DNA of 18,747 bases. Origin: Perkinsela sp. CCAP 1560/9. Lineage: Eukaryota; Protista; Euglenozoa: Kinetoplastea. The notes beneath the pieces were generated by a model, which made no database searches, had not been told where the DNA came from, and was given only the letters and a program-made list of their open reading frames with translations. The translations under genes were made by a program, and so were the position numbers. Positions 4,495-18,747 of the stretch are shown here, piece by piece (within the stretch, counting starts at the first letter, position 1; the number at the start of each line of letters is the position of its first letter). The DNA lies in assembly GCA_965644495.1 (NCBI GenBank), contig CBFFSA010000103.1, positions 1 through 18,747 of the forward strand, given 5' to 3'.

Positions 4495-5260
4495 TTTGTA
4501 TTAAGACCACTTTTTGTATTAAGACCACTTTTTGTATTAAGACCACTTTTTGTATTAAGACCACTTTTTGTATTAAGACCACATTTTGTATTAAGACCAC
4601 TTTTTGTATTAAGACCACTTTTTGTATTAAGACCACTTTTTGTATTAAGACCACTTTTTGTATTAAGACCACTTTTTGTATTAAGACCACTTTTCGTATT
4701 AAGACCACTTTTTGTATTAAGACCACTTTTTGTATTAAGACCACTTTTTGTATTAAGACCACTTTTTGTATTAAGACCACTTTTTGTATTAAGACCACTT
4801 TTTGTATTAAGACCACTTTTTGTATTAAGACCACATTTTGTATTAAGACCACTTTTTGTATTAAGACCACTTTTTGTATTAAGACCACTTTTTGTATTAA
4901 GACCACTTTTTGTATTAAGACCACTTTTTGTATTAAGACCACTTTTCGTATTAAGACCACTTTTTGTATTAAGACCACTTTTTGTATTAAGACCACTTTT
5001 TGTATTAAGACCACATTTTGTATTAAGACCACTTTTTGTATTAAGACCACTTTTTGTATTAAGACCACTTTTTGTATTAAGACCACTTTTTGTATTAAGA
5101 CCACATTTTGTATTAAGACCACTTTTCGTATTAAGACCACTTTTTGTATTAAGACCACTTTTTGTATTAAGACCACTTTTTGTATTAAGACCACTTTTTG
5201 TATTAAGACCACTTTTTGTATTAAGACCACTTTTTGTATTAAGACCACTTTTTGCATTAA
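4495..5260. repeat. Minisatellite: 42 full copies of TTTGTATTAAGACCACTT plus a degenerate partial copy
   Basis: Read directly; head-to-tail with no spacers; two single-base variant types. Confidence 0.97.
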
Positions 5261-5550: not shown

Positions 5551-8280
5551 TTGATGAATGGGCGCCTTCTCCCGTTTCCTCCGAGAGATGATTGTATCCA
5601 TGTGCTAGGCGGCAGAGTTGGACTGCTTCCAAAATCTTTGCGCAAACGTAATCGGAAACGCAAATCCTGCTTTCGGCGTGGCTACCGAGAGCAGAGACCC
5701 AAGATCAAAGCTATGAGAGAGGGGTTTGCAGTAAGCACCATGAATGTAGATACTTTAAAGTGTAAAACCACAGACGAGTTTGCTCTACGTAAATGTTTCC
5801 GTTTGCATCAAGCTGTAGAGTTCATGCGAAGTTACGGCGTAACAATAATGGCCTTGCAGGAAACGCGACTATCGTTCAAGAGCGAGGAACCGATCATTCA
5901 TCGTAGGCTCTATCTGGCTGGCATTAGTGTTAATATATATATTATGAGTGCAATAAAGGGCTATAACGGAATGGCAATGCTGAGTCTGCAACCCATGGGT
6001 GTTGAAAAGATCAATGATCGCATTATGAAAGGAACAATGCATATTGGAAAGATGAAGGCGTGTATATTTAATGTTTACTCCCCGACGGCTGGTGCAAAGA
6101 AAGAGAAGCAAGAATCGTTTGATGAGGAGCTATTTGATGCTTGGCATCATTCACAATGTTCGCTAAAGATAATATGCGGAGACATGAACGCACCTTTGCA
6201 AGATCCAAATGTCAGAAAATGTTGTTCGGAAAGAGCGCAAGAATTTCGCAAATTTTTGGTAACCCTTGGATCTAAATCGGCTCATCAATGTTGCAGCGCA
6301 GAAAGAAAGTGGACTTATAGGTTTCCACCTACGCCGAAACACCCTGATGGTCTAACAAAACAGCTTGATCATATCATAATAAATTCCCGTTTCAGCTCAG
6401 CATTTCGGTATCAGAAGGTGCTTTTGGCTCCCATACCTACGAGACACTGTGCAGTAATAGCAGGATTAAATATAAAATGGAGAGTGGCATGCAAACCTGG
6501 TAAGTTACAACCGTTTTGGGGATCTTTGAGAAACGAAACCATATGTGATACATTCGTGAAAAATGTGGAGGAGTCAATTCAGGGGGGAAATAAACGGTCA
6601 CGAGAAGGGTCAATTGGCCCCGCTTTATGGGATAAGCTATCGTCCGCAGTCAACTCCGCCGCAGAGAAATTACCCAGGAAAATTGCCAATATTGGAAAAG
6701 CTCCTGACTCGGAAACTGACTCGCATTCCCTTGATATGAAAACTATTGTGCAAATTGCTCGAAATCGAAGGACTTTCGATACCTTTGCTCGAGAACACGG
6801 AAAAATGATTGAAGAATGCGTGAAAGAAGAATGTGAAGTGATCCAAGAAAAGCTATATAAATGTCCAAAAAGCGCGTATCAAGCAATTCGCTATGTTGTA
6901 GGGGAAAATCGAAAAGTATTCTCCATGTTTGGTGAAAATGTTCGAGACAGTATGTGCAGAGTGAGAGGACATTTTCAGGCGATAGGTAACCAATTAAATC
7001 AAATTTCCGAACCGGTAAACTTCCCTAACTGTAATAAAAGCTTAATTGGTATTGAGGATACGGAATTTACCCTAAAGGAGCTCAGAATTTCTCTGCAAAA
7101 AGTCAAATCTGGAAAAGCTTCAGGCTCCGACAACATTCCTATTGAGGCTCTCTCTACATTGGCTCGGAGCGAAGAAGCACTTGGCATGCTCTTGAACATA
7201 ATAAATGAAGTAATGTGTACCGGTGCCGCGGCGGAGAAATGGAAGATGATTCTGCAAGTGCCACTTCCAAAGAAAGGGAATCTCAATGATCTTACAAATT
7301 GGAGACCGATATGCATTGTAAACCATGTGGTAAAGGTAATGAACCGGATGGTACTAGAGCGTATACAACCAGCCGTTGAGAATATGCTTCGCTCAAATCA
7401 GTTTGGATTTCGCCCGCACCGATCCACTGCCGGCGCACAGGAAACTTTCGTGGAAATAGCTACTAAAGCTTCGAGGGGAGAAGGTGTTGCGGTGGCGTTT
7501 GTTGACTTTAAGCAGGCATTTCCTTCCGTTACTTTCTCTGCAATACGAGATGCGCTGAGAGCATTCCACATACCGGAATATATTACTAAAGTTATTATGA
7601 GCATGTATGAAGGCCTGAAATCTTATGTGAGGACGCCTCATGGTGACACCGAATCGTTTTCTATTGAAAATGGTACTCTACAAGGGGATGTGCTTGCGCC
7701 ATATCTCTTTATTATGGTCCTCGACAGGATTATGGCAGAGGCCATTGACGCGAAGGGGTTGGGTGTCATTGCTTATTCCACCGGGACGAAGAGTCGCGGC
7801 GAAAAGCACCTCCGAATTTCTGATGTGGCATATGCAGATGACGTAGTTCTCTTCGCTTCTTCTAGGTCTGAACTCTCCGAAATGCTAGAAAACCTGTGCA
7901 AGTATGCAAAGAGGGCAAACCTTCAGGTAAATCTGGGCAAAAACAAGACCGCATGGATGGTTCTAGGAAAAATTGATATGAAAACTCCCCTTCTAGTCCC
8001 AAGTGTTGGAGAAATCCCCCGAGTATACAAATATAAATATCTTGGAAGTACACAAGAGAATGAAAATCGTCATGTAGCCCCACAAGAACGCATTCTTCTA
8101 GGATGGGCCACAATGCATAAACTTCATGCGATATGGAACTCACCCATTCAAGTCGCAAGTCGGTTAAAAATTATAAATATTAATTACAACTGCGGCACGT
8201 GGAATATTTCATCGAATCAAATGAGCGAATTGGACGTACAAGTCAGCAAAATGCGAAGATGGGTATGCGGAGTAGGGAAA
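5551..8280 (+). CDS. LINE polyprotein, 5' part: apurinic endonuclease plus reverse transcriptase (true start uncertain, e.g. ATG 5554 or 5713)
   Basis: APE motifs TMNVDTL, ALQETR, NVYSPT, GDMNA, LDHII, TRHCAV. RT motifs PKKG, WRPI, QFGFR, FVDFKQAF, GTLQGDVLAPYLF, YADD, YKYLG. The TAA at 8281 belongs to the inserted element. Confidence 0.95.
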
Positions 8281-8444
8281 TAATAGTTCACGTTTTGAAA
8301 TTTAGCCGAGGGGCGGCTATATATTTGCCTGCTGGCCCTTCGGGGCACATAATTTTCTCAAATTATGATGTAGTATTCTTTAACGATAAAGATACAGTTT
8401 CTGTACCTTGTTGGTTGTTATTTTGTTACGTTTAAAGTTTTGTG
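8281..8444 (+). repeat. Terminal repeat A1
   Basis: 8281-8379 is identical to 13526-13624 (99 bp); 8414-8444 is identical to 13673-13703 (31 bp); the middle segments differ. Confidence 0.95.
8381..8413 (+). other. Spliced-leader (mini-exon)-like sequence TAACGATAAAGATACAGTTTCTGTACCTTGTTG
   Basis: Contains the conserved kinetoplastid/diplonemid SL core CAGTTTCTGTAC, a TAACG 5' part and a TTG 3' end at the expected spacing. No SL-RNA intron or Sm site recognised downstream. Confidence 0.85.
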
Positions 8445-8445
8445 T

Positions 8446-9849
8446 ATGAGATCCCAACGTTTACGGGCTCCGTCGGAGCCACGCCAGGAGCGCGATAGAT
8501 CACCGAAGCGGAATAGGGCGCCGACACCCATTCAGACCTCCTCCGTCCAAGACCATTCTAAGCGTCAGTCCCTTTCGTGCCCTCCCGTGCGCCCCCCTCT
8601 CCCCCCTCTCCCCACGCAGCCGGCTCCGCAGGTATCCGCGCGACCTCCTCCGATTCCCCCTACTCCTGTCCCAGCGCGCCGAAAGGTACGCCCTTCAGGA
8701 AGAGCACTCAGCCCCGCCCGCGAACCGCCTAGCCCTCTCCCTTCCAACCTTCCCAGTTTGCCTGCGAGCTCCCTCCCTAGCCCGTACCCTTTTCCGCTGG
8801 AGGCTCCCGAGCCCCATATGCGACGAAGAGGAACCCTTAACCCCGACCAGGTTGAGGCTTCTCGCTCGCCGCGCCGTTACGAGGCCCTTGACATTGACCA
8901 CGTCGAGTTGCCTCAGCGTTCACGCTGTGATGCGCGTGGGATCATGACACAATCCAGCAAAGAAGAGTTCATCACGAAAGTGATTGAGCTTCTGCGCAAG
9001 GACTACGAGGTCACCGTCGAGGCTGTATGGTCCCTTCCCCGTGACGGCCTACGGCAGACGGTTATAGGGTTGGTGCATATGACGCATCCTAAGGACCCTA
9101 ACTCAACTGAGTTGTTCGCCGAGTGGGATGGGGACAAGAACACTGCCTATCGTTTTCCCCATCCCGAGATCAACTACCACTCTTTGGAACTGGCCCATGT
9201 TCGGGCGCAGATGCCGGGTGGGAAACCAGTTGAAGATCTGATCCCCACGTTTGAACGCGTCCGTATTACGGACCCGAAAGGCTTCTCCCCCTACGATCCG
9301 GTTACTTGGCAACCGTGGATCGACACGGATGATTTGTTCAAGCCACGTGAACTCATCCGTGAGCTGCGCGAAGCTCCGCAGCTTGGGGTACGCTTCAACC
9401 CTCCGCCGCAGCGTGAGCGCCTGTTCAAGATGTTAACTGAATGGGTGTACGCTGCGTGCAATACGGAGGGATGGCTAGAGAAGCACAACCTCGCCGTAGC
9501 CCTTCTCATCATCGAAGAGCTTCGCAACCATTATTGGGCTGCGGCGGGCGTTGCTGTCGAGCGTGTGCAACAGCGGTTGCACCGTGACGACGACCCTCAG
9601 GACCGCTACGGTCAGCTTGTGGTTGACGAGCAACTGAGGGGCCGGACTGCGCAGCGTGCTCCTCGTCGACGCAGCCAAGGACCTTTCTGTTTTGGCTGTC
9701 ATCAGCCAGGCCACCTCCGATCGAACTGCCCCCAAGCGTCCCAACAGCAGGGGGGGCAGTTCCGTACCACACGCACCCCGCAACAGGATTTTCGCGGCGG
9801 GGTGGTGGGCGGCGCCAACCGTTACGGCGCAACACGGGCTTTCCACTAG
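8446..9849 (+). CDS. Gag-like protein with Pro-rich N-terminus and CCHC zinc knuckle
   Basis: ATG at 8446; CFGCHQPGHLRSNC fits CX2CX4HX4C; first ORF of the element. Confidence 0.9.
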   Translation: MRSQRLRAPSEPRQERDRSPKRNRAPTPIQTSSVQDHSKRQSLSCPPVRPPLPPLPTQPAPQVSARPPPIPPTPVPARRKVRPSGRALSPAREPPSPLPSNLPSLPASSLPSPYPFPLEAPEPHMRRRGTLNPDQVEASRSPRRYEALDIDHVELPQRSRCDARGIMTQSSKEEFITKVIELLRKDYEVTVEAVWSLPRDGLRQTVIGLVHMTHPKDPNSTELFAEWDGDKNTAYRFPHPEINYHSLELAHVRAQMPGGKPVEDLIPTFERVRITDPKGFSPYDPVTWQPWIDTDDLFKPRELIRELREAPQLGVRFNPPPQRERLFKMLTEWVYAACNTEGWLEKHNLAVALLIIEELRNHYWAAAGVAVERVQQRLHRDDDPQDRYGQLVVDEQLRGRTAQRAPRRRSQGPFCFGCHQPGHLRSNCPQASQQQGGQFRTTRTPQQDFRGGVVGGANRYGATRAFH

Positions 9850-9866
9850 GAAATGCCCCCCACCCC
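9786..9866 (+). promoter_or_regulatory. Putative -1 ribosomal frameshift signal: G_GAT_TTT, 6-nt spacer, stem-loop
   Basis: The slippery heptamer is in the gag frame. GGGGTGGTGGGC (9799-9810) pairs 11/12 with GCCCCCCACCCC (9855-9866). The -1 frame is open into RT. Confidence 0.7.
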
Positions 9867-12743
9867 AATTACTGCTCGTGCCCGTCGTCCCAGGCGACGA
9901 CGGGTGGATATTCTTACCCCCGTTTCCTCCCCGTCTCTCCGCCAGCGCGAAAGACGGCCACGCGTGCGTGGCACTACTCCTCCTCCCCGCCCTCTCTCCC
10001 CGTTACGTCTAAGGCGCAGAAGCGTCTCCCTCCCAATCCGTCCTCTACCCCGGCTTCCCGTTCCCGTTTACACCGCCGCCAAGACCGCCGCCGCCAAAAC
10101 CGCTGCCGTCGTAACCGCCGACGCCGCGCAGCCTCCAGGAGGACGCCGCCAGGAGCTGCTGAGGGCGATTCTTCGAATGCCCCCCGAGGACCCGCGCGCC
10201 ACTCAATTGGGCGAGGCGCTCCAGCCCATGTGGGCAACGGCCACGTGGGCCACAAGGGAGCGACTGTGGTTCCGCCTGCGCGAGTATTGCCAGGCGAAGG
10301 GAATCACCGCGAATCCTGCAAACGCGGTGCTCTTCCTGGAGACTCTGCCTCTCGCTACCTCGACGCGCATGGGGTACGCAGGGGCATTGAGGACTCTGTT
10401 CGAGCTCATGGGAATCGAAGGTACCCCATTGAGTCTCTACGTAAAGGCCCTGCAAGCGCAGGGGGGGCTAGAACCCACGCGGCAGATGCTACCAATCACG
10501 CCACTTCTTCTAAAGAAGCTGAGACGTCATCTCGACGTAAAGGAGAGCATGTGTTGCCTCCTGTGTTGGAAAGCCGCTGCGAGATGGACCGAGACTGCCG
10601 ACCTGAGGCGGGAGCAGTTCGTGAGTGTGGCCAGTCACGAGGTAATCATTTATTGGGGCAGGGGGACCAAGACAACCCGTCTGAATCCTTACCGGCCGTA
10701 CCTCTACGCGATAGTGACTGGACCGGGGACACCCGAACTGGCTCAGTTTGTGGGAAGTTTGAGACCAGGCCAGCGCCTGTGTTACACGACGGTCCGGGAG
10801 ATGGACCACAGGATGAATCAACTTCTCGGTCCGGGGTATGGAACACATTCCATAAAAAGAGGTGCAATTACTTACCTATTCCACGAGATCTCCCTCGGGA
10901 ATCTCAGGATGGAGGACGTCCAGAACCTCACGAAACACCTCAACGTCGAATCACTGTTGCGCTACAACGCAAGCAGTATTACAACGGCAAGGGCTCTCGG
11001 GACGCAGAGAGTCTCAGCACGTCTCCCAGTGCTGTAACCTCGGAGCACGTGGCAAAGTGCTTCGAGGAAGTGCCTTACCTTCGCAGGCACTCCGTTGTTT
11101 GTGCACGCCGCTCTTCACGGCTAGCCAAGGCACACGACGCTCACCTACCTTTGCACGTTAAGAAGTCGATACCTGTTATCCATTTGGATCAGGTTAAGGA
11201 GTGGATGAGTCTGTCAGCTGCCACTCGTTTTCGCAAGGTAGTGGATGAATTATTATGGGTACCTAAAGCCCCGTACCCCGAACCTAGTGTGAAAGGTTCA
11301 TTGCCTGAGGCGGACGTCCGATTGTTGGAGGACGCAGGCATAATCTCCAAGGTCCCGGCGCAGGAGTTGAGAAAGCGCCCATCGATGCAGTTCATGATTC
11401 CCTTCACGGTTGTGGAGACCGATGATCAGGGCAATCAGCGCAGAAGGTTTATTTCGTGGACACGGGACGATAATGATAGACTTAAAGGATATGAACCACA
11501 GGTCCCTTTATATCATCCCTCCAAGTACCTTCATAAGGCGCACGAGCCGATGGCTGTGAAGCGGGACTTCACATGCGGGTTTTACCAGATTGGTATCCCG
11601 AAGAGGGCGCGGCCCAAATTCCGCCTTAGAACGAACAGTGGAGACGTGTTTGAGATGAACGTCCTCCCGATGGGCCATAGGTGTGCACCGGAGGTTATGC
11701 ACACGGTTACCGCCGCGATTGCTGGCGAGGCGTCGATTTGTTCTCAGCGCTACTCGTTTCACCGAGGCGCTATCGACGTTTATGTTGACGGAGTTCGGTT
11801 TGCAGGAACCCACTCCGAGGCCACCACGTACGCTCAGTTCATTGACGAGCGTTGCGACAAGGCGAACGGTCTTTTCAAAGATCGGGGTCAGCCCCCTGTA
11901 GCACAGTACGTGTTCAATGGGGTGGCGTTCGACCATAACGCGCATACGGTCTGCCTGGGACCGCGAGTGATCAGGAAACTGCGAGCCGACTCTTTCTTCA
12001 ACATTTCCTTTGTTGACCTAGAGGCGGTGGTGGGGCGCCTCATTTATGGCTCCGCAGTTCTCCGGCTCAATATGCCGCGATTTTATTTCGCTTTGAAGGT
12101 GGCGCAACGGCGTATCAACTTGTTGAACCGTTGCCCGAAGTTATGTGACCGTCCGGTCGCACTCCCTGTCGTCACTCGCTCCATGCTAGCAGAGTGGAGA
12201 AACGAGTTGTTGGAGAATGTTCCACGGTCTCCACCTCCCCACCCCGATGTTGTTCCACACAAGCATCGTCTCTACACCGATGCCTCGGTGAAAGGGTGGG
12301 GAGCGATTATGTATTTAGACAGCGGAGAGGTTTTGATTACGGGAGAGGCGTGGCCTGAGTCATCCTCGTATGAGGTGAACCGTGCGGAAGCTGCAGCAGT
12401 CCGCTTAGCCCTCGAGAAGTTTTCCGCGCATTGCCCCCGTGGAACCTGCTTGGATGTTTTTGTTGACAACACCTCCTGTCAGGCTGCACTGAACAGGAGG
12501 ATCTCCAAGTCAGAGGGGGTTTCAATGGAATTGCGCGAAGTCCTGCGACTGACAGAGGACAAAGGTATTTGTGTCAAGGCAGCGTACATATCCACGGATG
12601 AGAACCCGGCGGATGCTGTCAGTCGCGGGAAGGAGATTGAGAGAGAGAAGGTTGAGAAATATAAAGGCAACATCGACAAATACAGCGATAATCAGCATCA
12701 TCATATTGGTAAGCTAGACAGTCATATTGAAGGAAAACCCTAG
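9786..12743 (+). CDS. Pol: reverse transcriptase plus RNase H (frame open 9627-12743; track start 10230)
   Basis: DIRS-type RT motifs RDFTCGFYQI, LPMGHRCAP, YVDG, FNGV. RNase H motifs YTDAS, NRAE, FVDNT, NPADAVSRG. Manual translation shows no stop from 9627 to 10230. Confidence 0.9.
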   Translation, partial: GFSRRGGGRRQPLRRNTGFPLGNAPHPNYCSCPSSQATTGGYSYPRFLPVSPPARKTATRAWHYSSSPPSLPVTSKAQKRLPPNPSSTPASRSRLHRRQDRRRQNRCRRNRRRRAASRRTPPGAAEGDSSNAPRGPARHSIGRGAPAHVGNGHVGHKGATVVPPARVLPGEGNHRESCKRGALPGDSASRYLDAHGVRRGIEDSVRAHGNRRYPIESLRKGPASAGGARTHAADATNHATSSKEAETSSRRKGEHVLPPVLESRCEMDRDCRPEAGAVRECGQSRGNHLLGQGDQDNPSESLPAVPLRDSDWTGDTRTGSVCGKFETRPAPVLHDGPGDGPQDESTSRSGVWNTFHKKRCNYLPIPRDLPRESQDGGRPEPHETPQRRITVALQRKQYYNGKGSRDAESLSTSPSAVTSEHVAKCFEEVPYLRRHSVVCARRSSRLAKAHDAHLPLHVKKSIPVIHLDQVKEWMSLSAATRFRKVVDELLWVPKAPYPEPSVKGSLPEADVRLLEDAGIISKVPAQELRKRPSMQFMIPFTVVETDDQGNQRRRFISWTRDDNDRLKGYEPQVPLYHPSKYLHKAHEPMAVKRDFTCGFYQIGIPKRARPKFRLRTNSGDVFEMNVLPMGHRCAPEVMHTVTAAIAGEASICSQRYSFHRGAIDVYVDGVRFAGTHSEATTYAQFIDERCDKANGLFKDRGQPPVAQYVFNGVAFDHNAHTVCLGPRVIRKLRADSFFNISFVDLEAVVGRLIYGSAVLRLNMPRFYFALKVAQRRINLLNRCPKLCDRPVALPVVTRSMLAEWRNELLENVPRSPPPHPDVVPHKHRLYTDASVKGWGAIMYLDSGEVLITGEAWPESSSYEVNRAEAAAVRLALEKFSAHCPRGTCLDVFVDNTSCQAALNRRISKSEGVSMELREVLRLTEDKGICVKAAYISTDENPADAVSRGKEIEREKVEKYKGNIDKYSDNQHHHIGKLDSHIEGKP
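9853..11037 (+). CDS. Tyrosine recombinase (394 aa)
   Basis: Catalytic set: R (AARWTE), K (GTKT), HSIKRGA, H (TKH), Y (LLRY). Confidence 0.92.
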   Translation: MPPTPITARARRPRRRRVDILTPVSSPSLRQRERRPRVRGTTPPPRPLSPLRLRRRSVSLPIRPLPRLPVPVYTAAKTAAAKTAAVVTADAAQPPGGRRQELLRAILRMPPEDPRATQLGEALQPMWATATWATRERLWFRLREYCQAKGITANPANAVLFLETLPLATSTRMGYAGALRTLFELMGIEGTPLSLYVKALQAQGGLEPTRQMLPITPLLLKKLRRHLDVKESMCCLLCWKAAARWTETADLRREQFVSVASHEVIIYWGRGTKTTRLNPYRPYLYAIVTGPGTPELAQFVGSLRPGQRLCYTTVREMDHRMNQLLGPGYGTHSIKRGAITYLFHEISLGNLRMEDVQNLTKHLNVESLLRYNASSITTARALGTQRVSARLPVL

Positions 12744-12762
12744 GGGACAGGATCACCAAATA

Positions 12763-12870
12763 CAAAAAAAAAAAAAAAAAAAACAAGACAAGAAAAAAAG
12801 AAAAAAAACAAAGACAAGAAAAAAAGAAAAAAAACAAAGACAAGAAAAAAAGAAAAAAAAAAAAAAAAAA
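12763..12870 (+). repeat. A-rich low-complexity tract with CA(A)AGACAAG-An units, directly after the pol stop
   Basis: Read directly. Confidence 0.85.
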
Positions 12871-13308
12871 GAGAGCGGACGGGGTCCTGGGGTTTGGAGG
12901 TTGTCCCTATAATTTTGGAAGGTTATGGATGTTAATCGGTTGACAAACTTTATCCTCACGCCTTGGTTTTCGAAAAAAACAAGGTTCCCCAATGTGAGAT
13001 AAAGGTGAGTAAAGTTTTCTTTACTCTGCGATTAGCGCCTTAATGTTTTTAACCGCGTCATTGTTGACACGGCCGTACACCACGCCTAGTTGCTCCACAC
13101 TTCTAGGTCCCAAGTTGGTATATGGGCAGAGGTTGAAAGCGTAACCTGTGTAGCTCGTGTGAGCTTGTAAAGGGCGTGGTAATGGACTGGTCATCTATTG
13201 CTATCGTTATCCTTTTGTGAGCTCTGCATATTTTGATATTTTCTATCTATTAATATTTGACTACGTGATTGGGCATTTTGCGTTTATTGTGACGTGTGTG
13301 TGGGCAGG

Positions 13309-13525
13309 TTGGCCGAGGGTTCCGGTGGGGGGGAACCCCGTTAACAGAGTGACATTGATTGTGTTGTTTTATGCAGGCTTGTTTCTTTTCCATCTTTGTG
13401 CGTGTGAAATGAATGAATGATATGTTGTGTCATTTTGAATTACGATTGAGCTATTCATAGTTGTTCATTTATTCATATATGTTATCAGTGTATATGTTTC
13501 CAGGGAGCCCCTCGGCGTGGATTTC
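13309..13525 (+). repeat. Repeat B1 (217 bp)
   Basis: Identical by eye to 13728-13944. Confidence 0.96.
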
Positions 13526-13703
13526 TAATAGTTCACGTTTTGAAATTTAGCCGAGGGGCGGCTATATATTTGCCTGCTGGCCCTTCGGGGCACATAATTT
13601 TCTCAAATTATGATGTAGTATTCTCTAATTGCATGGAGGGGGGTGTTTACTCGTTTGTTATATTCTTGTTAGGTTGTTATTTTGTTACGTTTAAAGTTTT
13701 GTG
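13526..13703 (+). repeat. Repeat A2, with a candidate trans-splice acceptor (T-rich tract then AG at 13671-13672)
   Basis: Matches A1 in two blocks; abuts B1 to form the B|A junction. Confidence 0.95.
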
Positions 13704-13727
13704 CCCACCCACCGAGCCCCCAGCCAT

Positions 13728-13944
13728 TTGGCCGAGGGTTCCGGTGGGGGGGAACCCCGTTAACAGAGTGACATTGATTGTGTTGTTTTATGCAGGCTTG
13801 TTTCTTTTCCATCTTTGTGCGTGTGAAATGAATGAATGATATGTTGTGTCATTTTGAATTACGATTGAGCTATTCATAGTTGTTCATTTATTCATATATG
13901 TTATCAGTGTATATGTTTCCAGGGAGCCCCTCGGCGTGGATTTC
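13728..13944 (+). repeat. Terminal repeat B2 (217 bp)
   Basis: Identical to B1; ends GTGGATTTC, followed by LINE sequence. Confidence 0.96.
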
Positions 13945-15219
13945 AGATGGAAAACGGGAAAGTGCATTCGTCTTGAATCTCTTTATCAAGATGACTTGAA
14001 ACTCAGCACAACATCAAAAATACAACGTGCTCAACTTATTGGCCATCTTGTTCGACATGAATCGCCGTTTAGCCTAGCCATTCTGTGGCGCGTGCAAGAC
14101 AAATCATCATATCCTTCGATCTCTGAATTATGCGCAAAAGATTTAAATCTTTCAATAGAAGAAGTCATACATTCGTCTCGGGACCGCGCCTTATGGAGGT
14201 CAAGCGTTGATCGACTACGAAATCGGATCGAACCACGCCCTGATTATGTACCCATCGAAGCAAAATCATGGGAAAAACGAGCAATGGTTGCACGAAAAGA
14301 GAGTCAATATAAATCACTACAATTCGTCGAAGAAGGCGCATTGCCATTCCCAAATATTTCTCGAGCCGTACACATGTATACTGATGGCTCTCTTAAAACA
14401 ACGAAATCGAAAGTTACTTCTCGATGCGGAATCGTGTGGTCGGGGGATGGTATTGAGAAGTCCTTAATGGGAGTACGACCTCCAACGGATATTGAGCTCA
14501 CCATAACTGCGGTAGAGCTCTATGCCGTATATGAGGCACTGAATCTTGCGGCACATTATGGGCAGGACATTGTATTACACACAGACTCAAAATACGTATG
14601 GGAATTCTTCCACATTATAAGGCATCGATTTTGCATAGTTGGGTTTCAATTATTCCGGAGCGCACAACTACTCAAGAAGATACAACTTTTGTGTTCTAAG
14701 ATCGAGCAAAATAGCAATGTATATTGCATCAAAACCAGAGGGCATGAAGGAAACCCTCACAACGCAACCTCAGACTGGCTCGGTAAACGAGCTTGCGCAC
14801 ATCAAGACGAAAACCCTTCCTTTACTTACCGCGGTTTTGATATCGTGACCAATCAAAAGAGGAAAGGTAACGAAGTTCAAAACAATATGAAAAAGAACAA
14901 AAACAAAAATACGAAATTACCAGAGTTTGCGCACACACCTATCGAAATGTCTCCTACGCACTCTATAAGCACGAAAAATAAAGGTAACCTGATAAATGAA
15001 AAGGGGAAACGATCAAGATCCAAGAACAAGCGTGAAAATGCGAATACGCACAGCAACCAAAAAGCACGAAAAACTGATGGAAAGAGGAGTACGAATACAT
15101 ATTCACCAGGATTAGCAGAGGTAACTTTAGCAAGAAAGCATCCGCAAAGAAAGCGAGCTAATTGTGAAGAGGAGTGCAAGAGAACTCGAAAGGGGGGGAG
15201 CTCTTCTTCTAAAACGTGA
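13945..15219 (+). CDS. LINE polyprotein, 3' part: post-RT region, RNase H, basic tail
   Basis: RAQLIGHLVRH post-RT motif. RNase H motifs YTDGS, VELYAV, HTDSKYV, GHEGNPHNATSD. In frame with 5551-8280. Confidence 0.93.
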   Translation, partial: RWKTGKCIRLESLYQDDLKLSTTSKIQRAQLIGHLVRHESPFSLAILWRVQDKSSYPSISELCAKDLNLSIEEVIHSSRDRALWRSSVDRLRNRIEPRPDYVPIEAKSWEKRAMVARKESQYKSLQFVEEGALPFPNISRAVHMYTDGSLKTTKSKVTSRCGIVWSGDGIEKSLMGVRPPTDIELTITAVELYAVYEALNLAAHYGQDIVLHTDSKYVWEFFHIIRHRFCIVGFQLFRSAQLLKKIQLLCSKIEQNSNVYCIKTRGHEGNPHNATSDWLGKRACAHQDENPSFTYRGFDIVTNQKRKGNEVQNNMKKNKNKNTKLPEFAHTPIEMSPTHSISTKNKGNLINEKGKRSRSKNKRENANTHSNQKARKTDGKRSTNTYSPGLAEVTLARKHPQRKRANCEEECKRTRKGGSSSSKT

Positions 15220-15654
15220 TTTTGGAAGCCCAAAAGTTGAATGGAGTATCATTTTATTTATTTTGTTTATTTATTTTTACTTTTATTTTATATTCAATAA
15301 TGCGATCAATTGGTCTGTTTCAGCAGTTGAAGAGGGGGTTGTGAGACGAAGGGTTGTTCATATATTTATATATATATTTATAAATTGTATTTATACGTTA
15401 TTATTTGTTTTAGTTGTGTTTCGAACAGATAAGGTGGCCAAGTGTATGGGAGGTGAGTTGGAGGACATTTTCGCCCTATAGGGCCATTCTCATAAGAAAG
15501 TAATGAGGATGCACGAGTTCTTGGCTGCAGATGGACTCTTTGCGCGTAAATTTTATGTGAGTTTACATGGAGAAGTGTTTATGTTTATGGTGTAAATTGT
15601 AAACCCCCCAGCTGATACATATGTATCAGTGTCTTTGTTGTTGTTGTTGTTGTC

Positions 15655-16420
15655 TTCGAGGACAGCGTCACATCATCCATGTATGCTCGGATTTTCACAT
15701 CAGGAAAAAGCGTGGCGACTTCAACAAGCGCAGTGCAGTAGGGTACAAAAATATAGAGAGGAGAGAGCGGACCCCTGTCGAACTCCGGATGTGCTCTTAA
15801 TAACGGCGTGGAGATGGTTGTTTGCAAAGAAAAGCAAGTCCGAAGGGTCGCCATATTCAAGGTAGAAAAGCCTCATGAAAGGTCTGAAAATGTTGTTTTC
15901 GTTCAACGCGCGAGCTATAGCTGCTCTCTGCGGCGTGTTATACGCGTTGGAGTAATCCACTGTCAAAATCGTATGTCCGTCATCGTAGTCGTGAAGAAGT
16001 TCATGTACAAGGCTTTCGCATGCGTTCTTCTGTAAAATACCGCTTTGGTAGGGAGAAAAGAAGTTTTTCAAAGTGTCTTCGTGTCTTTGCAGTAGAATAG
16101 AGCCGCATACTTTCAGGATCGTGTCGCCCATCGCCATTGGAACTGGAGAGTTACAATCAAAGAAATCACTTTCCACTTCAGCATTTTGTGTGTCAATACA
16201 CTCGGAACTTGGAATGTCTCCTTCTCCTGTGTTTTGTGTGTCAATACACTCGGGGCTTGGAATGTCGCCTTCTCCTGCATTATTTGTTACTGCGCATATG
16301 TTTGTTTCTTTCGTGGATGGGTGTGCATCTTCTCTTGGCTCATTATTGTCTCGACTTGCGTTCGTTTCTCGCATTGAAGGTTGGCTTTCTTCTGCGGCAG
16401 GGTCATCGCTCTTGTCATTG
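15655..16420 (-). pseudogene. Deleted and frameshifted CRE/SLACS-type retroposon fragment: acidic N-terminal region fused to RT core
   Basis: PMAMGD, QSGI, VDYSNAYN, GVRQGSALSSLYFC, then RAYMDDV in a second frame; truncated at a (CAA)n run near 15635-15652. Confidence 0.85.
16181..16280 (-). repeat. Two 48-bp coding repeats (N[A/T]GEGDIPS[P/S]ECIDTQ)
   Basis: Visible in both the DNA and the 15721-16374 translation. Confidence 0.9.
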
Positions 16421-17832: not shown

Positions 17833-18747
17833 TTATTGTTGGAGTTCTCCCAGCCATTGAGTTGGTGTCATGTACTTTCTCAGTTGATTAGCTACTGTGT
17901 AGGCGTTCATCTTTTCAATCTCTAGCTGAAACGCTTCCTTGACTTCCTTGACATTTCTTTCTGACCGTTTCGCTAAGCATTCCAACAATCGCCTGGTATT
18001 TTGATGGAGTAGTCCGAACTCTGTAACCGCCAGGCAACTAAATTCCTGCGTTGTAATACCCTTTTCCACCACATATTTCTTGTTCTTTCTTTCCAGAGCA
18101 TTCTGCATCAGTTGTTCAGGAGTTGATTTTATGTGGCTTGGTGCACATGTGTGTACTACCGTTAAGTCGTATAGCACCTCTCCGATGGTAGGCCACATGA
18201 TCCCAAGGTCAGGTCCTGATCTTATGCGTCGCGCTTTACAGGGATGGTTCTCAACTGCTTCATCCGAGATGGAGGCCTTGCATTTCGTGCAGTAGAATGA
18301 TGTATGAACTCTTGGTTCGAGCACGTGCGGCAGACCAGCTTTCGCGCACAATTCCCCAAGGAACCGAATAAGATGTGTGTGCTTTCTTGTAGCATTAACT
18401 CCAGAGCATTGTGTACATCCGGCTACGTGGTGCAGGGCGTTGCTTGCAGACAGTTCGGTTGAGCATCCAGGGCATGGAATGAGGTCTGGCATTTCGGGGG
18501 GCGTGCAACCCAGGCGCCTCATGACACTATATCTGAAGAGATAGGGGTTCACATAGTTGCTCGTGGAGTGCAGATGGTTGTGGGAATTTGTCGTGCGATC
18601 GAGTATATCATTCAGTTTTTTGTTTCTTCGCAGTTCAGCGGCGATCATTTTTTGCTCTCCCCTGATTGCTTTCGTAGCCATCTTGCTCGCTGTTGATTTG
18701 TCTTCTGGCAGCACTGAAATCTTCTTAGTGTGTTTCGATTTCTCCAC
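17833..18747 (-). CDS. C-terminus of a CRE/SLACS-type non-LTR retroposon ORF: Zn knuckle plus restriction-like endonuclease (partial; continues beyond the window)
   Basis: CPGC...HHVAGC, RKH, EPR, PDL, YDLTV, KNKKY, EFG motifs typical of the RLE domain. Confidence 0.88.
   Translation of the reverse strand: MEKSKHTKKISVLPEDKSTASKMATKAIRGEQKMIAAELRRNKKLNDILDRTTNSHNHLHSTSNYVNPYLFRYSVMRRLGCTPPEMPDLIPCPGCSTELSASNALHHVAGCTQCSGVNATRKHTHLIRFLGELCAKAGLPHVLEPRVHTSFYCTKCKASISDEAVENHPCKARRIRSGPDLGIMWPTIGEVLYDLTVVHTCAPSHIKSTPEQLMQNALERKNKKYVVEKGITTQEFSCLAVTEFGLLHQNTRRLLECLAKRSERNVKEVKEAFQLEIEKMNAYTVANQLRKYMTPTQWLGELQQ

Follow-up and report, generated by a model that had tools for sequence, protein, structure and literature searches.

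The question raised by this locus is whether a retrotransposon that joins VIPER-type gene order to split direct repeats represents a new architecture, and how such an element would be expressed and copied. The window, that is, the whole stretch of 18,747 nt analyzed from contig CBFFSA010000103.1 of Perkinsela sp. CCAP 1560/9, contains one element of 5,664 bp at 8281–13944. Its order is A1-gag-YR-RT/RH-B1-A2-B2, in which A and B are the split direct repeats, YR is a tyrosine recombinase and RT/RH is a reverse transcriptase (RT) with RNase H. Judged by its motifs, the element represents a new family within the VIPER-like (VIPER/TATE) superfamily and not a new architecture; what is new here is the family and its host, and one copy of the spliced leader (SL) in the front repeat. 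Taken as a whole, the locus is probably best explained by a young and complete VIPER-like element in an SL-using euglenozoan, together with the route of expression and copying proposed below.

Architecture, family and classification

The repeat search covered positions 7000–15500 of the window. B1 and B2 are identical at 217 of 217 nt. A1 and A2 have two blocks in common: 8281–8383 matches 13526–13628 at 99%, and 8413–8444 matches 13672–13703; the identity is limited to nt 1–99 and the last 32 nt, and the middle of A1 (8380–8413) is not diverged A sequence. B1 is connected directly to A2 (GGATTTC|TAATAG), A2 and B2 are separated by one 24-nt spacer, and three frames are open between A1 and B1. 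The gene and repeat order, the open reading frames (ORFs) and the identical B copies given by the initial annotation were thus confirmed by repeat search and ORF analysis, and the identical repeats support the recent insertion that it had suggested. The GC content of the element is ∼0.6, and its surroundings are AT-rich (∼0.42). No inverted repeats of at least 30 nt were identified in the searched range; neither long terminal repeats (LTRs) nor a DDE integrase was found in the element by repeat search and Pfam, and the Rfam scan of the element identified no ribozyme and no other RNA family.

Both ends of the element are exact. In contigs from three public runs, 8280 is fused to 13945; exactly 5,664 nt are absent, and no letters are shared at the joint. 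The interrupted sequence is one long interspersed nuclear element (LINE); its frame stays in phase over the 8280|13945 joint, and there is no target-site duplication. Due to slight differences in the flanks, the uninterrupted contigs are regarded as paralogues of the host LINE, not as the empty allele. The B|A junction of the element is located between one inverted GCCCCTCGGC / GCCGAGGGGC pair, a 10-nt motif; on the basis of these inverted arms, the junction is a plausible candidate for the recombinase site.

The genome examined is 21 Mb in size (110 contigs). Copy number and divergence, one of the checks proposed by the initial annotation, are those of a sizeable family: the genome search identified at least 8 full-length copies at 90–98% identity, plus many partial ones, and pattern counts over the whole genome gave at least 44 B|A junctions; A starts number 134 and B ends 178, both of these counts taking in close sister families. 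The termini TAATAG...GGATTTC are common to all copies, and the A1...B1-A2-B2 arrangement is kept in 9 further full-length copies. Among 10 flank pairs, neither a target-site duplication nor a target consensus was found; the insertion sites are varied. Within copies, A1 equals A2 and B1 equals B2; between subfamilies, A is ∼86% and B is ∼77% identical, with indels. Because the repeats are uniform per copy yet divergent across subfamilies, each transposition renews them, in keeping with what the published model requires. In B, conservation between subfamilies extends over the terminal 22 nt and the initial ∼55 nt; in A, it covers the initial ∼95 nt and the polypyrimidine/AG site, and the spacer is conserved as well.

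In 7 of the 26 sampled copies, each of the three frames is at least 97% open. Substitutions among copies at codon positions 3, 1 and 2 are 94:19:18 for gag, 88:39:29 for YR and 60:26:24 for pol; gag, YR and pol are all under purifying selection. Three copies (L006, L019 and L026) have a single B and no A2-B2 (form A-I-B). One tandem array (G000:C34:57806-59083) contains at least three A-spacer-B units of 419 nt and resembles SIRE, the short interspersed element of T. cruzi. Such A-I-B copies and A-spacer-B arrays can be due either to recombination between repeats or to replication variation.

The gag product contains one zinc knuckle of the pattern CX2CX4HX4C. Pfam gave only weak matches on the element, namely the zinc knuckle and RT_RNaseH at E 0.006. 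For the YR protein, no match was obtained from Pfam and nothing from the PDB sequence-profile search; the fold search alone was informative. Its AlphaFold model (pLDDT 71) matched Cre recombinase over both domains in Foldseek (E 6e-8, probability 1.0, TM 0.56), and the catalytic R, K, HxxR, H and Y are all present, in the pattern R ... K ... HSIKRGA ... KH ... RY. According to this predicted structure, the YR is a tyrosine recombinase with a two-domain Cre-like fold. The pol product ends ∼35 aa past RNase H; it contains no further Pfam domain and no methyltransferase.

For classification, the most conserved words of the element were searched in the supplementary alignments of Ribeiro et al. 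2019 (PMC6681497). In the RT/RH alignment, RRRFI occurs 18 times, VDNTS 21 times, NPAD 51 times and WIDN 40 times; PFTVVE and LPMGH are also present. The RT/RH blocks common with files 12 and 16 are PF[TS]VVE, RRRFI, LPMGH, DV[WY][IV]D[NG][IV]R, TDAS..GWGA, AEA.AVRLA, VDNTS and NPAD..SR, and one example of a VIPER/TATE sequence reads IPFSVVEEK..RRRWIAWP...LPMGHKAGPE...DVWIDNIRITG...YTFLGVQFDH...TDASLHGWGAV...AEARAVRLAL...VWVDNTS...ENPADGISR. In the YR alignment, HSIKRG occurs 33 times in the context ...ASRW.E...PKT...HSIKRGA...GKH...RY; the YR blocks common with files 13 and 18 are W..A.RW.E, KT..(x)P.R, HSIKRGA, KH and RY. The VIPER-type signature is found in the RT/RNase H, with the lost second Asp of YxDD as one part of it; the DIRS reference in the same file reads YLDD. 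These common motifs of RT/RH and YR support, at motif level, the VIPER/TATE lineage proposed by the initial annotation.

The same survey describes A1...B1-A2-B2 repeats in VIPER of T. cruzi and C. fasciculata and in TATE of L. braziliensis, some of them 100% identical, with SIRE corresponding to A2+B2 (PMC6681497). Viper is also listed among elements with split direct repeats by Szitenberg et al. 2014 (PMC4157794). A1...B1-A2-B2 repeats with gag-YR-RT/RH are therefore the published architecture of the superfamily, and the claim that gene order and split repeats form a new combination fails; the statement that VIPER termini are not described as clear split direct repeats does not hold either, and a family of the same structure is already described at the superfamily level. 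The survey covered 44 trypanosomatid genomes as well as Bodo saltans; Perkinsela and Diplonema are named nowhere in the text or supplements of PMC6681497.

Like VIPER (Trypanosoma cruzi, Crithidia fasciculata and others; DIRS order; Lorenzi 2006; PMC6681497), the element has the gag(CCHC)-YR-RT/RH order, A1...B1-A2-B2 repeats, identical where copies are young, a motif C lacking the second Asp, the RT/RH and YR motif blocks, no methyltransferase and a euglenozoan host. Different from VIPER, it belongs to another host lineage and has many intact copies; its motif C is YVDG (WIDN in VIPER), gag and YR are in one frame, pol overlaps all of YR, and it has SL scars, for which we found no VIPER report. 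TATE, the telomere-associated element of Leishmania braziliensis, is similar in superfamily, gene order and split-direct-repeat pattern, the published copy having an A of 381 bp and a B of 294 bp. TATE uses one telomeric-hexamer position and forms tandem clusters, whereas the copies here are at varied sites. The counterparts of SIRE are the 419-nt A-spacer-B units, which form the 3′ end of the element and also short tandem arrays (C34).

Ngaro and PAT elements also have A1...B1-A2-B2 split direct repeats, and their proposed replication is through annealing between repeat portions. In both, the YR is downstream of RT/RH and the RT has the canonical YxDD; PAT contains a methyltransferase domain. 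They are said to have been described by Goodwin and Poulter in 2004 and by Poulter and Goodwin in 2005. Different from Ngaro, the YR here (9853–11037) is upstream of the RT/RH domains (11085–12632). A DIRS-like or PAT-like element was rejected, given the lack of a methyltransferase domain and of inverted repeats of at least 30 nt; inverted terminal repeats, with an internal complementary region, would mark the DIRS-like type. An LTR retrotransposon was rejected as well, since LTRs and an integrase are lacking and none of 10 insertion sites shows a duplication.

The exhaustive HMMER search gave 1,117 cluster representatives of RT/RH relatives at E ≤ 1e-30. Of ten representatives looked up, names were available for those from Diplonema only. 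Among relatives, motif C is Y[IVL]DG or [WF][IV]DN, never DD. The nearest named RT/RH relatives are hypothetical proteins of Diplonema papillatum, and the nearest Atlas clusters are from Euglenozoa; the word-index protein searches (RT/RH, RT/RH profile, YR) otherwise matched metagenomic or assembly proteins. Many annotated "hypothetical proteins" of Diplonema papillatum belong to this RT/RH clade (P0031/P0032, P0043, P0066), and at least two proteins of this species have the recombinase HxxR motif upstream of RT in the same frame. With these proteins, VIPER-like elements seem to reach diplonemids, outside the range of the 2019 survey. One distant relative, with 30% identity in RT/RH (L065; ENA ERZ24900291 ctg3704c), is located in a tandem array whose period is 8,124 nt; within the array there are two RT/RH ORFs that differ from each other (825 and 958 aa) and one low-complexity ORF on the minus strand.

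The spliced leader copy in the front repeat

The SL RNA gene was located in L031 (G000:C1:661319-661647), where it forms tandem units 297 nt apart. Its exon is AACTTTAACGATAAAGATACAGTTTCTGTACCTTGTTG; AACT stands before the exon and GTATGAG after it, as expected for an SL RNA gene. It is of kinetoplastid type (...ACAGTTTCTGTAC...), near but not identical to the prokinetoplastid motif quoted in PMC7859406. The SL exon 32-mer occurs ∼397 times in the genome, compared to 0 for the control. Most dispersed copies follow poly(A) runs and precede unrelated 5′ untranslated regions (UTRs), with the first 1–3 nt missing or altered. Owing to the poly(A) before and the unrelated 5′ UTRs after them, these copies are interpreted as retrocopies of trans-spliced RNAs. 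In one public run under the same species label, too, contigs carry the SL in front of other sequences. The A-rich tract that follows the pol stop (L013, L014, L023 and others) is an insertion hot spot for SL-headed retroposons; in several copies the tract is directly followed by (T)CTTT, the SL and an unrelated 5′ UTR. Due to these insertions, many genome matches break at query ∼4500–4590.

In the middle of A, A2 reads CTAATTGC...TTATATTCTTGTTAG|GTTGTT, whereas A1 reads TTAACGATAAAGATACAGTTTCTGTACCTTGTTG|GTTGTT; the 34-mer in A1 is the SL exon. This scar comprises 36 of the 38 nt of the exon if the shared CT at 8378–8379 is counted, otherwise 34 nt. It takes the place of the 43-nt polypyrimidine/AG segment of A (a2), and it is joined to the last segment (a3) where A2 reads AG|GTTGTT. 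The SL-a3 joint is present at seven genomic places, all at the same AG, compared to 58 unspliced acceptors. Upstream of the SL, five different junction types were observed, with microhomology or extra nucleotides: A nt 1–99 with 2-nt microhomology in the window copy, full A at three loci on C36, full A plus 8 extra nt on C52, a jump within the SL at the shared TAAAG on C21, and gag nt 148 inside a rearranged copy on C8 (L014). The cap-adjacent first two nucleotides of the SL are missing or altered in the scars, as in most SL retrocopies here. In a limited literature search, we found no report of SL scars in YR retrotransposons or VIPER.

Since A1 has lost the polypyrimidine tract and AG, the window copy may be poorly expressed despite its open frames. 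The earlier description of the element as young and possibly active is thus upheld as to age, by the identical repeats, and weakened as to the activity of this copy.

The scar in A1 and the six other SL-a3 joints suggest that trans-spliced RNA undergoes reverse transcription, the RT jumping from the capped 5′ end to A2. In the route that we propose, the element would be transcribed in a polycistron and trans-spliced at the AG within A; the resulting RNA would start with SL|GTTGTTATTTTG, that is, the SL, 32 nt of a3 and then gag. At the 5′ end of the RNA, minus-strand cDNA would transfer to the internal A2 via the a3 homology, restoring a full A beside B. The typical jump, inside the 32-nt a3 homology, would be traceless, whereas an occasional jump after copying of the SL would fix the SL in A1; in the window copy, the RT would have run into the SL before jumping. 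An SL of 36–38 nt in place of the 43-nt a2 fits an unpaired flap across a2 while a3 is annealed. The recombinase would then join the cDNA to the target at the B|A junction, with its inverted 10-nt motif, and cause no duplication. Going further, the SL-capped mRNA may be the normal replication template, with a3 as the retroviral R-like guide of the first jump onto A2 and the scars as late jumps; we hold the chances of this extension to be evenly balanced.

To our knowledge, the replication of split-direct-repeat YR retrotransposons is a model without direct evidence. If our reading of the scars is true, they would be the first sequence-level record of the annealing/template-switch step in the scheme proposed by Goodwin and Poulter for elements with split direct repeats, and they would show 5′-end regeneration by a promoterless retroelement in a polycistronically transcribing host. 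Genomic SLs that mark reverse-transcribed, trans-spliced mRNA are also present in dinoflagellates, as relict SLs of retrogenes (PMC6050394, PMC5585692). The dinoflagellate SLs head retroposed host genes; here, an autonomous YR retrotransposon carries the SL within its terminal repeat, and element sequence is rebuilt upstream of the SL.

VIPER was long thought extinct, and complete copies with repeats were found only in 2019. The genome examined here offers one large young family with many open copies, and the scars in it would show where the RNA begins, where it is trans-spliced and where the jump lands. If they are combined with the pol frame that overlaps all of YR and with the conserved candidate recoding cassette, both described below, VIPER-like expression and copying could be tested in this system. 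On the classification side the case is ordinary; a known superfamily is extended to another euglenozoan host. SIRE reportedly (work of Vazquez and colleagues, 1994) gives the P2beta genes of T. cruzi a trans-splice acceptor; this acceptor would parallel the one in A here.

Table 1. Positions of the element's parts and of the interrupted host LINE in the window
Feature	Position	Strand	Basis or remark
A1, 5′ split direct repeat, 164 nt	8281–8444	+	a1 8281–8379 = A2; scar 8380–8413; a3 8414–8444 = A2
Spliced-leader exon copy inside A1	8380–8413	+	Alignment to A2, other copies and SL RNA gene
gag-like ORF, first ATG 8446, stop TAG 9847–9849	8446–9849	+	CCHC zinc knuckle ∼9688–9735
Candidate −1 frameshift/stop-readthrough cassette, ∼90 nt around gag stop	9783–9870	+	Near-invariance across subfamilies
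Tyrosine recombinase (YR) ORF, 394 aa, gag frame	9853–11037	+	Catalytic motifs, Cre-like predicted fold
pol frame, 1038 codons, −1 relative to gag/YR	9627–12743	+	RT/RNase H domains ∼11085–12632; RT motif C = YVDG
A-rich tract, imperfect 26-nt units, directly 3′ of pol stop	12749–12872	+	Length differs among copies
Non-coding 3′ region	12873–13308	+	
B1, identical to B2	13309–13525	+	Last 22 nt and first ∼55 nt conserved between subfamilies
A2, complete A, 178 nt	13526–13703	+	Polypyrimidine tract and trans-splice acceptor AG 13670–13671
A2-B2 spacer, 24 nt	13704–13727	+	Conserved between subfamilies
B2, 3′ terminal repeat	13728–13944	+	
Host LINE ORF, 5′ part (APE endonuclease and RT), outside element	5551–8280	+	ORF/Pfam, uninterrupted contigs
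Host LINE ORF, 3′ part (RNase H), outside element	13945–15219	+	In phase with 5551–8280 across empty site

Overlapping frames and alternative explanations

The gag and YR genes share one frame, and their sole separator is one TAG (9847). The −1 frame stays open from the end of gag through the entire YR gene and then RT. No stop is observed in the −1 overlap, compared to a mean of 12.1 and a minimum of 3 in 5,000 synonymous-codon shuffles that preserved the Gag/YR protein and codon usage. In the +1 frame, 20 stops are present. Of the 25 other copies sampled, 16 have a pol frame that is at least 97% open, including some that are only ∼91% identical in this frame. N-terminal extensions of 270–425 residues that lack the YR motif were found in ∼35 relatives (30–57% identity).

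At the end of gag, the segment 9783–9870 starts with GGAUUUU and encloses the TAG. Across subfamilies, there is one variable site in 9783–9868, and the 160 nt upstream of the segment differ by up to ∼19%. The predicted fold of 9745–9900 has a z value of −2.1. G7 at 9750, the sole strict slippery heptamer, was rejected as the shift site since it is not conserved between subfamilies. From its position and conservation, the segment is a candidate cassette for −1 frameshift or stop readthrough. Ribosomes would produce Gag; some would slip −1 at the cassette near the gag stop and cross the YR gene, giving Gag-Pol with RT/RH, and others would read through or reinitiate past the single TAG, giving the recombinase.

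The points that count against our explanation are taken up here beside the alternatives to it. One alternative is that the −1 frame over YR is untranslated, that RT/RH is made from its own start codon (e.g. through internal trans-splicing), and that the openness is a by-product of GC-rich composition; we consider this unlikely. It would agree with the 60–64% GC of the region and with the short N-termini in ∼32 of 68 scorable relatives. GGAUUUU is not a canonical X_XXY_YYZ slippery heptamer, and the substitutions in the overlap track the YR frame, with no enrichment of the pol-frame wobble type at its third position; because of this substitution pattern, the trans-frame peptide looks like a spacer that is kept open and not conserved as a protein. 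However, every one of the composition-keeping shuffles contains at least 3 stops and the +1 frame contains 20, the frame is open in subfamilies that are ∼9% apart there, and there are also the long N-terminal extensions without the YR motif in relatives and the near-invariant cassette at the gag end. As for the lineage, it is very unlikely that the element is Ngaro-/PAT-like, or forms a new superfamily, outside the VIPER/TATE lineage and converged on the VIPER gene order. The word-index searches (RT/RH, RT/RH profile, YR) returned no trypanosomatid protein, which reflects the index and not absence; the motif C YVDG is absent from published VIPER/TATE alignments; and VIPER/TATE membership is supported at the level of motifs, by comparison with these alignments. 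These points are set against block-by-block motif identity with the published VIPER/TATE RT/RH and YR (YLDD in the DIRS reference), the lack of a methyltransferase domain, the position of YR upstream of RT, and WIDN/WVDN, as in VIPER/TATE, in the more distant relatives of the family.

The SL could also have entered A1 through DNA recombination or gene conversion with an SL-headed processed retrocopy of the element mRNA, made in trans by a LINE; this origin is possible and, in our judgement, rather improbable. SL-headed retrocopies after poly(A) tracts number in the hundreds, LINE machinery is abundant in the genome, and one SL-a3 joint (L014, C8) is beside gag nt 148 in a rearranged copy. Some scars may have spread through duplication; three of the seven have one junction in common, and two of those are in a segmental duplication (C36). 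The element transcript was not found in one possible RNA run, which holds the SL; the template of the jump could be the same RNA, a second RNA or plus-strand DNA; and the host is taken as a euglenozoan from its kinetoplastid-type spliced leader. Against an origin by recombination with a retrocopy, the window copy has standard YR-type ends, without poly(A) tail or target-site duplication, and its junction deletes exactly the intron-like a2 via the 2-nt microhomology. In all five junction types, A-derived sequence is directly before the SL, as a jump onto A2 predicts, and among the seven joints no free-standing, SL-headed and poly(A)-tailed retrocopy of the element was seen.

Surroundings of the element in the window

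The contig start (1–2193 of the window) consists of 219 perfect copies of the 10-mer TCTTCCTCTT, which is pure pyrimidine on this strand. At 4495–5260, 42.6 copies of one 18-nt unit (TTTGTATTAAGACCACTT) precede the interrupted LINE, in which APE, RT and RNase H are in one ORF. On the minus strand, the ORF at 17833–18747 has no Pfam match and extends past the window edge. Another retroelement remnant is located downstream of the element at 15721–16374, also on the minus strand; this ORF fragment of 217 aa matches RVT_1 at E 4e-7.

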